Below are positions 43,529-59,064 of a DNA stretch of 64,000 nucleotides, piece after piece. Position 1 is the stretch's first letter, and each line of letters begins with the position of its first letter. The stretch lies in the sequence record MT446416.1; one strand, given 5' to 3'. The translations under genes were made by a program, and so were the position numbers. Below the pieces are notes generated by a model that was given only the letters and a program-made list of their open reading frames with translations, was not told where the DNA came from and ran no database searches.

Positions 43529-43539
43529 TATATTCTCCG

Positions 43540-43569
43540 AAAAGAAAGGACTCTGTAATCAGAGTCCTT
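43540..43569 (-). terminator. Intrinsic terminator
   Basis: GGACTCT-GATTAC-AGAGTCC-TTTCTTTT. Confidence 0.75.
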
Positions 43570-43579
43570 AATTTATATT

Positions 43580-43822
43580 TTATTCTTCTTCACCGAATCG
43601 AATTTTTTTCAATTCTTTTCGTTGTTTGCGAGCAATGGTACTTTTGTGAAGTCTATTACCACGTTTTGTGTCTTTCGTGATGTACCATGAATCTTCTGGT
43701 GCATTATAATCACAATAACCATCTTCTGTAATCGTCCCTAAGAAAGCAGACTTTTTAGGAATGGATGTTTGAGCTTTAGCAGCGAATTGGCCTTTTGCTA
43801 ATTGTTCACGAAAACTGAGCAT
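43580..43822 (-). CDS. Small basic hypothetical protein
   Basis: ATG 43822 after GGGAG. Confidence 0.6.
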   Translation of the reverse strand: MLSFREQLAKGQFAAKAQTSIPKKSAFLGTITEDGYCDYNAPEDSWYITKDTKRGNRLHKSTIARKQRKELKKIRFGEEE

Positions 43823-43867
43823 AATAGTATCTCCCAAATTGTTACGAAGAACTTGTGTTCTTCATTA

Positions 43868-44110
43868 TTATTTAGGGTTGCTCGAAACCTCTACTGAAGC
43901 GATGAATGCCAAAATATCATCTTTACTGAAAGCTTCAATAATATAAGCAACCGCTTTATCGTACTGTTCTTTCTTAGTAGTGTATTCTTTCATTTTGTGA
44001 ATTTTACGTTGTGCTTTAACTTTTGCAGCTTCCATATCAGGCATTTTAAATTCAACACCCAATGTGTCAGCTAAATGTTTTGCACGAGATGATACTTTAT
44101 CAATATTCAT
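43868..44110 (-). CDS. Hypothetical protein
   Basis: 80-aa ORF coupled to glutaredoxin (TAATG overlap). Confidence 0.6.
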   Translation of the reverse strand: MNIDKVSSRAKHLADTLGVEFKMPDMEAAKVKAQRKIHKMKEYTTKKEQYDKAVAYIIEAFSKDDILAFIASVEVSSNPK

Positions 44111-44358
44111 TAATTCCAGCGACCTTCTTTAAGACCTTCAACGAAACCAGTACAGCCACCTGGAACGTAAACATCGTTTACGAAAATTTGTGGAACCTGT
44201 CGTACTGGCTCGCCACATAGTTCAGATAGTTTAGCACCATCAATACCAGCGGTAACAATATCGATAAACTCCATATCAAATTTGTTATTTTCACATACTG
44301 CTTTTGCAGTGTCGCAGAATTTACAACCAGTAGTGCGACCATAAATTTTAACTTTCAT
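44110..44358 (-). CDS. grx: Glutaredoxin (NrdC/NrdH-like)
   Basis: CKFC active site, VPQIF, GG. Confidence 0.9.
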   Translation of the reverse strand: MKVKIYGRTTGCKFCDTAKAVCENNKFDMEFIDIVTAGIDGAKLSELCGEPVRQVPQIFVNDVYVPGGCTGFVEGLKEGRWN

Positions 44359-56524: not shown

Positions 56525-56953
56525 TTAGTTAATAATAAAGGTAACTTCAGGATTCATTTCTGAAACTGCATTTCTTTTACTTCTATTCCATAGTACTCTA
56601 TTGTTATATAATGAAGAATCACAAATTATAAGTAAGCAATTCCTTAATCTACTTACAGTACTTTGATTACTTAAATCAGTTTCTGTAACAAAAAATACAT
56701 TATCAGGAACTTCTACAGGAATTGATTTATCAAAGAAGAAAACTACAATAGGTCTGTTTGTATGAACTAAATTAATAAAGTCTAAAATACTGTTATAAAA
56801 TTCAGTTCCTTTGTTTAAACTTAATGGATCTTTGATCCTCTTCAAATATGTCTGAACCAATTTATGATCGTTTTTGATTTGATACTCAAAATATTCTTTG
56901 AATAACATTTGTGTTAATTCAGATGTATTGGATATTTTCGTTGTGTTACTCAT
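56525..56953 (-). CDS. Hypothetical protein
   Basis: 142-aa ORF. Confidence 0.5.
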   Translation of the reverse strand: MSNTTKISNTSELTQMLFKEYFEYQIKNDHKLVQTYLKRIKDPLSLNKGTEFYNSILDFINLVHTNRPIVVFFFDKSIPVEVPDNVFFVTETDLSNQSTVSRLRNCLLIICDSSLYNNRVLWNRSKRNAVSEMNPEVTFIIN

Positions 56954-57093
56954 TCACTTCGTTCTCTCGTAACTCAAGAAGTCACTACGTTTACTTCGTA
57001 AACTAGTTCCTTCTGAAAATGATAATGTACTTTAAAAGCTTGACGGGATTTGTTGAGGACTATTTCATCCCCCCGCAGGGGAATGAAGGTAAT

Positions 57094-57119
57094 AAAAAAG
57101 AGACAATTAAGTCTCTCTT
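57094..57119 (-). terminator. Intrinsic terminator within the non-coding gap
   Basis: GAGAC-TTAATT-GTCTC-TTTTTT on the minus strand. Confidence 0.7.
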
Positions 57120-57155
57120 GACGATGATGGCATCGGATATTATCGAATTGCGAAT

Positions 57156-57338
57156 TTCTCAAATTTTGGACGGATCTTTCTTGTACCAAAATTTAGAGAG
57201 CGAAAGCGGGTTGCTCGGTTTCTCTCTATCGCAGTCATATGCAACGGTCGCTGGTCTTTTCATCAACAGCACTCAGTACTAAACTCTATTCGATCAAAGT
57301 AGTACCTGTTCTCAAATTTTGGACGCAACTTTCTTGTA
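57156..57338. repeat. Two-copy 30-nt direct repeat (28/30 identical)
   Basis: 57156-57185 TTCTCAAATTTTGGACGGATCTTTCTTGTA and 57309-57338 TTCTCAAATTTTGGACGCAACTTTCTTGTA. Confidence 0.9.
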
Positions 57339-57614
57339 AAATCGCGTCCACAATCCTTGAACTCCCTTAGCAAATTCGTAAGGTGCGAACCTTATACATC
57401 TATCTAGGAACTCTCTGTGTGCTTATTGGAGTTCTTTATACAGCCGTGTCGCCGTGATTCGTGGTCTTATCTCGTGTTTGTTTGATTGCCAGTACTCTAA
57501 CAGGTTTCTTTTGCTGTTCGCTACAACGGTAAAGCTCATCTATCCTTTACATTTTCAAGAGAAGTAGGTTCTCATTATCCATTTTTCAATGTCCGTTGTC
57601 ATTTTACAATATAC

Positions 57615-57642
57615 ATTATATCACTAGGATGTATTATGTCCC
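57615..57642 (-). promoter_or_regulatory. GGGACA-N16-TATAAT promoter
   Basis: Minus strand GGGACA taatacatcctagtga TATAAT, pointing into the non-coding gap. Confidence 0.65.
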
Positions 57643-57643
57643 G

Positions 57644-58057
57644 TTACATGTATACCTTTTTCAAATCCTTGGAACAACGGTCAAAAATTGTTTTGATGAA
57701 TTCGACATCCTCTTTGATATTGGAGTCTATAGCATCATTCTCGTTTCTTGTCGTGTTCCTGTATTTGTGTTCAGGGTGATTGTATACCACCTTGACTACA
57801 TTATTTAGGTCTACAAAAAATGACGATTTTTGCGTATAGGAAGCCTGAAGCTTAATGAGTTTACCATCGTTTTGTAGATTAGTCTTGTGAATTAGTTCTT
57901 CAATACCATCTAAATGGCTATAGCTATCCTGTTCTTTGACGAATGTAACAGTTACCAGTACTGACTTCTCATCTCCAAAGTCAGAGATATTTTTAACAGC
58001 ACTGATGATTTCTAAGTTTGAAAAATCTAATTCTTTTAGCATTACAAGTATTTCCAT
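57644..58057 (-). CDS. Hypothetical protein
   Basis: ORF coupled to the upstream gene; true start may be ATG 58042. Confidence 0.55.
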   Translation of the reverse strand: MEILVMLKELDFSNLEIISAVKNISDFGDEKSVLVTVTFVKEQDSYSHLDGIEELIHKTNLQNDGKLIKLQASYTQKSSFFVDLNNVVKVVYNHPEHKYRNTTRNENDAIDSNIKEDVEFIKTIFDRCSKDLKKVYM

Positions 58058-58452: not shown

Positions 58453-59064
58453 TTAATTGTGATTATTCAATTTCTTTTGTTCTTTTTTTAGAGCTTTCAT
58501 ATGTCGTCCAAAATCACGGACATGCCATATATGGTCGGTTTCCCATAGTTCTGTACGTAAACGGCGTTCTTCCAATTCTTCTGGAGTAGGAATTTTAGAT
58601 TTCTTCTTATCTTTATTGAAAAAATCATTCATATGTTCTTCCAGTAGATTTCTACCCTTAACTTTTTCCAGGAATTCATCTACTGATTCAGTTTTATTAG
58701 AACGAAGACTGTTACAACGTGAACACATTGTGTTGTAATTTGACTCTAAATCAGGTCCACCCTTAGATGCTAGTTGGTTATTATCTACTGTCATCAGTAC
58801 TTCATATAGACCACAAACTGCATAGACATTTAAGTGAGGTTTACCATATACCGGATCTGTGCTATGTGAACGCTCAATGCGAACTTCAGTAGCTTCAATG
58901 CCACACGCAACGCATTTGCAATTCTTAACGAATGTCAGTACTTTTTGTGGGAAGTATCGGAAAGTAACACCGTTATATGTATAGCGTTTCATCTGTGTAC
59001 TTCTTTGATTTAACTCATTAAGAAGTGATAGTTTGGCAACATAGTAGACCTGATATTTTGACAT
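58453..59064 (-). CDS. HNH/McrA-like Zn-binding protein
   Basis: CVACG ... TVDNNQLASKGG.D...N...MC..CN..RS; the usual DH histidine is Asn. Confidence 0.65.
   Translation of the reverse strand: MSKYQVYYVAKLSLLNELNQRSTQMKRYTYNGVTFRYFPQKVLTFVKNCKCVACGIEATEVRIERSHSTDPVYGKPHLNVYAVCGLYEVLMTVDNNQLASKGGPDLESNYNTMCSRCNSLRSNKTESVDEFLEKVKGRNLLEEHMNDFFNKDKKKSKIPTPEELEERRLRTELWETDHIWHVRDFGRHMKALKKEQKKLNNHN

Follow-up and report, generated by a model that had tools for sequence, protein, structure and literature searches.

Organization of the gene-free gap

The stretch of DNA analyzed here (64 kb, hereafter the window) is the last 64 kb of the genome of an Asteriusvirus, a Rak2-like jumbo phage of 352 kb identical to Escherichia virus TH47 (TH47 288451–352450), with close relatives that include 121Q, PBECO4 and Sharanji. 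Within the window, a 690-nt gap (56954–57643) contains no ORF of 90 aa or more and is flanked by two minus-strand ORFs at 56525–56953 and 57644–58057. With a 60-aa cut-off the largest ORF-free stretch of the window lies inside this gap, whereas with a 90-aa cut-off one other stretch (43529–44347, 819 nt) is longer, so that the preliminary description of the gap as by far the largest was slightly overstated. The GC content is 0.40–0.435 inside the gap, compared to 0.24–0.36 in the flanks. A promoter is located on the minus strand at 57642 to 57615, and consists of a –35-like GGGACA (57637–57642), a 16-nt spacer and an extended –10 element, TGATATAAT (57615–57623); it matches 10 of 12 consensus positions plus the TG, and the predicted start is at about 57608. 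A terminator-like hairpin followed by U6 is present at 57094–57119, although it was not listed by an automated scan, presumably because the stem extension in that scan absorbs the U run. When folded as a single sequence, the minus strand was more stable than its shuffles (z = –4.5), and the plus strand gave z = –2.4.

To ask whether the gap encodes a known RNA, the whole window was scanned against Rfam 15 at gathering scores, which gave no hits. At E up to 10 the gap gave only two chance-level hits, and 12 further copies of the element (see below) gave nothing consistent at E up to 5. ARAGORN found no tRNA or tmRNA in the window. Thus, no match was obtained to ROOL, GOLLD, OLE, HEARO, raiA, RNase P RNA, tmRNA, or group I and group II introns, and no description of the element was found in the papers searched.

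The gap is one copy of a family in Rak2-like jumbo phages

The preliminary description treated the gap as a single element. However, three further copies lie in the same genome, at about 49.4, 146.0 and 262.0 kb of TH47; they are 72–73% identical and all lie on the same strand. A profile built from the four copies found a full-length match in nearly every locus fetched from 15 other genomes, with one RaK2 copy matching only in part. These genomes are A4, JNE01 and EJP2 (Asteriusvirus), CBB, GAP32 and XbC2 (Mimasvirus), BF and fHe-Yen9-04 (Eneladusvirus), RaK2 (Alcyoneusvirus), and 7t3, Munch, fENko-Kae01, Kaldavass, Hallingskeid and XaC1, whose records name no genus. In total, 64 distinct copies were collected from 16 genomes, 2–5 per genome, each of about 400–555 nt, with a mean pairwise identity of 67% and a minimum of 53%. 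Searches by blastn with three different members always returned the same 70–72 phage records, all of the Rak2-like group. A profile search of loci from pattern scans kept 13 hits, most of them in viral contigs of about 350–380 kb, and none of the bacterial loci, although these scans were incomplete and this is no proof of absence. In a phylogenetic tree, paralogue groups were shared across genera, so the duplications are old, while the copies of Asteriusvirus and of XaC1 clustered by genome, which suggests concerted evolution or separate duplications. The core is more conserved than the flanking genes: against PBECO4 it is 96.9% identical, compared to 92.8% for the wider stretch.

An extended –10 element (TGnTAYAAT) lies 33–79 nt upstream of the conserved core in 57 of 64 copies, preceded by a genus-specific –35-like motif, and this places the RNA on the minus strand of the window. 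One copy of this genome (copy B) lacks a nearby –10 element. TH47 has 20 promoters of the class G(G/A)GA(C/T)A-N16-TGnTAYAAT, all on the gene-rich strand, of which three drive copies of this RNA. Several copies are antisense to both neighboring genes, namely another copy of this genome (copy C) and the copy located between the endonuclease VII and baseplate hub genes in BF, 7t3, Hallingskeid and EJP2, and they must therefore be independent units. In two transcriptomic runs, the deepest contigs over a 5.6-kb stretch lie on 57214–57677 and 57218–57632, and contigs of the paralogues are present too. Because contigs show neither ends, strand nor level, and DNA may be present in those libraries, this provides only weak support for transcription and no direct evidence of a discrete transcript.

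Covariation supports a predicted pseudoknotted RNA structure

To assess whether the copies share a structure, we first applied RNAalifold to MAFFT alignments, but the global fold obtained was partly implausible because of pseudoknots and indels. We therefore used a model-free helix and mutual-information analysis on a plain MAFFT alignment of 63 copies. Nearly all of the top 30 column pairs were Watson-Crick-compatible, each with 3–4 different pair types, and some were 160 columns apart. From this analysis 74 pairs in 17 helices were assembled, of which 97.4% of cells were paired, compared to 78.1% in shuffles (0 of 500 reached this value) and 39–45% when the partners were slid. Changes on both sides were found in 55 pairs; 847 cells showed such changes, against 224 in shuffles, and the covariation score was 0.558, against 0.202 in shuffles and 0.06–0.11 when slid. 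Since the structure was read from the same alignment, the derivation was repeated on 28 copies from Mimasvirus, Eneladusvirus and Kaldavass only. The 8 helices (40 pairs) found there were 98.1% paired in the 35 held-out copies (slid, 34–45%), and in 10 pairs the held-out set had new doubly changed pair types.

G-U cells outnumber A-C cells 365 to 27. Thus, the structure belongs to the promoter-defined strand and to RNA, rather than to a DNA cruciform. It might be considered that the gap is only a conserved DNA element, such as a set of protein-binding sites or a recombination target, or that it hides small protein genes: direct repeats are present, and short ORFs exist and have been annotated by others, for example 121Q gene 516. 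However, the compensatory changes, the G-U over A-C asymmetry, indels that are not in multiples of three, and the absence of any ORF conserved across the copies make this very unlikely, and the small ORFs called by several depositors across these loci are spurious.

Predicted anatomy of the minus-strand RNA

All features below are on the minus strand. Downstream of the promoter, a 5' leader (57568–57614) is variable between paralogue groups; in most other copies it carries an AAYYCUG motif plus a variable hairpin. It is followed by hairpin H1 (57540–57567), with the conserved loop GAAAAUGUA and compensatory changes in 5 of 6 pairs, and hairpin H2 (57520–57535), which is 100% paired with 2 of 3 pairs compensatory. 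The long-range helix H3 (57513–57517 with 57440–57444) encloses H4 (57500–57503 with 57452–57455) and a variable insert; both helices are 100% paired, and H3 was also recovered from the training half in the held-out test. In pseudoknot PKa, 57447–57449 pairs with 57396–57398 (98.9% paired, 3 of 3 pairs compensatory). Hairpin H6 (GAACU/AGUUC, 57408–57434) has 5 of 5 pairs compensatory with up to 6 pair types, and its loop (57421–57423) pairs with 57369–57371 to form pseudoknot PKb, which was also seen among the mutual-information pairs and by eye; the invariant AAGGGAG follows at 57362–57368. Hairpin H7 (UAAG/CUUA) lies at 57379–57394.

Hairpin H8 (57278–57305) has a stem of 10–13 bp that forms in 63 of 63 copies with very different stem sequences. 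Its 7-nt loop (57288–57294) pairs with 57142–57148 in the long-range pseudoknot PKc, which is 99.8% paired with 7 of 7 pairs compensatory and was the first helix recovered in the held-out test. Hairpin H9 (57249–57271) contains the top mutual-information pair. A central knot (57149–57245) comprises pseudoknot PKd (57241–57245 with 57210–57214), H10 (57229–57233 with 57149–57153), H11 (57222–57226 with 57202–57206) and H12 (57196–57199 with 57157–57160); these four helices are 96.6–100% paired and all were recovered in the held-out test. Thus, at least four pairings are pseudoknots. In addition, many unpaired nucleotides are invariant, for example GACCGUUGC, GAUAGA and AAGGGAG. A 30-nt direct repeat corresponds to an optional module, with an A/U-rich stem and the conserved loop UACAAnAnAGnUnCGUCC, present here at both 57309–57350 and 57156–57194, the latter inside H12; by our pattern count it occurs at the first site in about 35 of 63 copies and at the second in about 21 of 63.

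Of the seven hairpins proposed in the preliminary description, five are conserved. Those at 57406–57436 and 57379–57394 show covariation, that at 57064–57087 shows one-sided changes only, that at 57161–57194 is the stem of the second optional module, and that at 56984–57007 is conserved with compensatory changes seen by eye among the Asteriusvirus copies. The hairpin at 57320–57350 is a copy-specific pairing inside the first optional module. The hairpin at 57194–57228 is not conserved, and covariation supports H11 (GAGAG/CUUUC) and H12 (UCUC/GAGA) instead.

The 3' region and its direct repeats

Hairpin P3'a (57118–57136) folds with 4 bp or more in 63 of 63 copies, and compensations (C-G to A-U, and in RaK2) were seen by eye; its 3' strand and flank are repeat unit 1 (AUCAUCGUCAA, 57118–57128). 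The terminator-like hairpin at 57094–57119 had been taken as the terminator of the RNA, but a hairpin plus U5 or longer occurs at this place in only 27 of 63 copies, with varying stem sequences. It is optional, and it is internal to the conserved region, because conserved structure continues about 150 nt past it. It is always followed by hairpin H15 (57065–57086, UCAUUCCCC / GGGGGGAUGA), which is 93.4% paired with mostly one-sided changes, and by repeat unit 2 (AUCCCGUCAA, 57040–57049), at the end of the HMM-defined core. Beyond this, most copies in all genera examined carry a further module up to the next gene (here 56962–57003, reaching almost to the start codon at 56953), which reads AAAGUAC, AUGAAUUGAG, a hairpin with ACGWAGUGA, then AACGAAAAUUCUUGAC, a covarying hairpin, and GGCAAAU. 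In the window copy the two hairpins correspond to hairpin A (56989–57003) and a hairpin B-like element (56962–56980), and compensatory changes in both were seen by eye. ACGWAGUGA was rejected as a genome-wide promoter signal, with 9 sites against about 5 expected. The 3' limit of the RNA may therefore lie at about 57094, 57040 or 56960. The 3' end is probably heterogeneous, with termination at the optional hairpin plus U run in some copies, and read-through or processing near the second CGUCAR repeat in others.

The arrangement raises the possibility of a cis-acting leader cassette, in which the folded RNA modifies the transcribing polymerase, as in put-like processive antitermination, or gates read-through at the optional terminator into the conserved downstream module and genes. 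Consistent with this, 36 of 63 copies have no terminator before the downstream module and gene, so that in those copies the RNA may be the 5' part of a longer transcript, and in the '94k' paralogue group repeat unit 1 itself forms the 5' arm of the terminator hairpin. A terminator/antiterminator switch involving unit 1, however, holds only in that group. Moreover, the copies between the endonuclease VII and baseplate hub genes, conserved across genera, sit antisense to both neighbors and carry a terminator-like hairpin plus U run, so they have no co-directional annotated genes to serve, and put RNAs appear to be much shorter, at about 65 nt. We regard this explanation as unlikely.

The two direct repeats, AYC(N)NCGUCAR, change in parallel within each copy. 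At one position they read U/U in 39 copies and C/C in 24, with no exception, and at another G/G in 34 and A/A in 28, with one exception. CGUC changes to CUUC in both repeats of RaK2, and to UGUC in both repeats of one Hallingskeid copy. Both states occur within single genomes, so the constraint acts within each copy. No common pairing partner was found: the best candidate for unit 2, AGAUGAG near the 5' end, fits in 13 of 63 copies and does not covary. A role as template for rolling-circle reverse transcription (DRT2-like) was not supported, since PF00078 gave no match in TH47, CBB or BF, in a search whose control detected 3 of 14 control genomes. Two identical short sites (CGUCAR) flanking a roughly 80–110 nt segment and changing in parallel might be expected of paired processing sites, and together with the many invariant unpaired nucleotides inside a pseudoknotted core could point to a ribozyme that processes itself or other RNAs. 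Against this, the RNA matches no ribozyme model in Rfam 15, several gene copies suggest a stoichiometric rather than a catalytic need, and there is no evidence of a processed product. A ribozyme thus seems improbable.

Distribution of the copies around the genome

All copies of a genome lie on one strand and are spaced more evenly than expected by chance, at about 75 kb, with gaps of about 62–86 kb in 5-copy genomes (P for a smallest circular gap at least as large as observed, 0.0001–0.018). This is the main support for an alternative already raised in the preliminary description, that of a replication origin. In an RNA-primed (R-loop) version, the promoter-driven structured transcript would stay hybridized, or be processed near the G-rich hairpin and CGUCAR repeats, and prime leading-strand synthesis, for which ColE1 RNA II and the T4 origins oriF and oriG would be likely precedents. 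The size and the promoter-driven non-coding layout, as judged from sequence only, resemble ColE1 RNA II, two short direct repeats and an AT-rich stretch lie at the 3' side, and the phage promoter class that drives the copies is a limited set of 20. However, about 85% of TH47 is by our estimate transcribed on the same strand, so co-orientation is weak evidence, and positions are inherited by synteny, so the spacing is in effect one evolutionary observation. Cumulative GC skew showed no inflection at any of the four copies and followed the direction of transcription, although this is weak evidence against an origin because phage skew is dominated by transcription. In addition, an intrinsic terminator would release the RNA and, to our knowledge, no known origin RNA shows this degree of pseudoknotted, covarying structure with invariant unpaired bases. 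The origin explanation is therefore doubtful, though it gains some weight from the spacing.

Discussion

These results support the core inference of the preliminary description, that of an undescribed, large, structured phage non-coding RNA on the minus strand with its own promoter, on the basis of covariation with a held-out test, promoter conservation, and the absence of matches by Rfam and ARAGORN. We are highly confident that this is a real structured RNA family. On this sequence evidence, and without direct evidence of a discrete transcript, the gap is a gene for a non-coding RNA of about 0.5 kb (up to about 0.65 kb if the downstream module belongs to it), which belongs to a previously uncatalogued family kept in 2–5 diverged paralogous copies in Rak2-like jumbo phages, most copies having their own strong sigma-70-like extended –10 promoter.

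How the RNA acts can only be inferred. We consider it somewhat more likely than not that it works as a folded RNA, not as DNA and not as a coding sequence, and that it acts in trans as an abundant RNA that binds one or more proteins or assembles with itself, as a scaffold, decoy or ribonucleoprotein core. This is because some copies are stand-alone units antisense to their neighbors, and because the many invariant unpaired bases in a knotted core resemble protein-binding or self-assembling RNAs. More speculatively, and as the least certain step, several diverged copies with strong promoters suggest a need for dosage from a single infecting genome. On the other hand, no partner protein is identified, no neighboring gene is consistently linked, and a purely trans-acting RNA does not need even spacing on one strand; the protein sponge or anti-defence decoy of the preliminary description remain suggestions. 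It is possible, though we think it less likely than not, that this is a new class of large RNA with its own biochemistry, either a self-assembling or catalytic RNA, or the RNA component of evenly spaced, RNA-primed replication origins of 350-kb genomes, in which case the two co-varying CGUCAR repeats would mark sites of processing, switching or priming.

Large, highly structured bacterial and phage RNAs are rare, and the few known classes (RNase P RNA, tmRNA, group I and II introns, OLE, ROOL and GOLLD) each revealed new biology. The RNA described here occurs in lytic phages of E. coli K-12 and O157 that are already in culture, its alignment is rich in covariation, and it is kept in several diverged copies across at least three named genera, which implies strong selection. 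It therefore makes the long-standing question of what large ornate phage RNAs do directly testable.

Among known systems, the ColE1 RNA II and T4 oriF/oriG transcripts are likewise promoter-driven and non-coding; RNA II is of similar length, probably about 550 nt, and RNA folding matters for it, and T4 has several sites per genome. The present RNA has a far more elaborate conserved tertiary-type structure and an optional intrinsic terminator, with no GC-skew inflection at the copies. The four RNA-seq-defined lncRNAs of the distantly related Pseudomonas jumbo phage PA5oct (PMC7318152) are non-coding transcripts of 236–619 nt, two of which are highly expressed throughout infection, but a profile search detected no sequence homology with ncRNA001 or ncRNA002. 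HK022 put RNA is also a structured RNA made directly downstream of a promoter of the sigma-70 type, but the present RNA is about eight times larger, and some copies are antisense to their neighbors and carry a terminator-like hairpin plus U run. Like 6S RNA and CsrB-type protein-sequestering RNAs, it is presumably abundant and could bind protein stoichiometrically, which is the mode of action we favor, but it has no repeated GGA-loop array and no open-promoter mimic, and Rfam models do not match. It is closest in kind to ROOL and GOLLD, large ornate non-coding RNAs, often phage- or prophage-borne, that form RNA-only multimeric cages (bioRxiv 10.1101/2024.12.08.627333): it is roughly 0.5 kb or more, carried by a phage, has many helices and pseudoknots with strong covariation, encodes no protein, and has an unknown function. 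It matches neither Rfam model, however, and whereas ROOL and GOLLD frequently neighbor tRNA genes, no tRNA genes occur in the window. It further differs from ROOL and GOLLD in being dispersed in 2–5 copies per genome, most with their own promoter, and in its hosts, which are Enterobacterales and Xanthomonas jumbo phages.

Paralogous copies and their distribution in the genome

Three paralogous copies of the same RNA lie in the same phage genome outside the window, in TH47 (MT446416) at about 49.4-49.9 kb, 146.0-146.5 kb and 261.9-262.4 kb (loci L006, L004 and L005). Copy C lies antisense to its neighbouring genes, and copy B lacks a nearby –10 element. In addition, a RaK2 member of the family lies next to a gene annotated as an RNA polymerase sigma factor. 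At the genome scale, the copies are spaced more regularly than chance, as seen for example in CBB (32, 94, 174, 258 and 336 kb) and in Hallingskeid (52, 119, 196, 275 and 341 kb), with gaps of 62-86 kb and P between 0.0001 and 0.018 in 5-copy genomes, and all lie on one strand.

Genome-wide analysis of TH47 showed a tight promoter class, G(G/A)GA(C/T)A-N16-TGnTAYAAT, with 20 sites, all of which are on the gene-rich strand. In the window, sites of this class are found at 57615-57642 and at TH47 312303 and 333312 (window about 23853 and 44862). In one paralogue group, the '30k' group (e.g., loci L006, L029 and L027), a hairpin plus U7 run lies directly after the predicted transcription start and before the conserved core; it looks like a terminator placed inside the leader.

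Repeats and modules within and downstream of the RNA core

A 30-nt direct repeat at window 57156-57185 and 57309-57338 is an optional hairpin module with a conserved 16-nt loop. This module is inserted at either of two sites in different family members, which suggests a portable protein- or RNA-docking motif. Two short direct repeats (AYC.NCGUCAR), at window 57118-57128 and 57040-57049, co-vary in parallel at several positions across 63 copies, keeping the same letter rather than a complementary one, and we found no pairing partner for them. A further conserved module lies downstream of the RNA core, at window 56962-57003 and in the equivalent 100-150 nt after most other copies. It reads AAAGUAC, AUGAAUUGAG, a hairpin with ACGWAGUGA, then UUGAC plus a covarying hairpin plus GGCAAAU, and may be part of the RNA, a second small RNA, or a promoter and leader.

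Open reading frames at and around the RNA loci

Only one other long stretch of the window, 43529-44347 (819 nt), is without an ORF of 90 aa or more. Depositors have annotated short 'hypothetical protein' ORFs across the RNA loci in the records of 121Q, A4, 7t3, fHe-Yen9-04, Kaldavass and others, for example 121Q gene 516, and these are probably spurious. Two genes upstream of the RNA, the ORF at window 58453-59064 (minus strand) has the same length and relative position as 121Q gene 513, which is annotated as an HNH endonuclease, whereas no such gene is annotated beside the copies whose loci we inspected in other genera.
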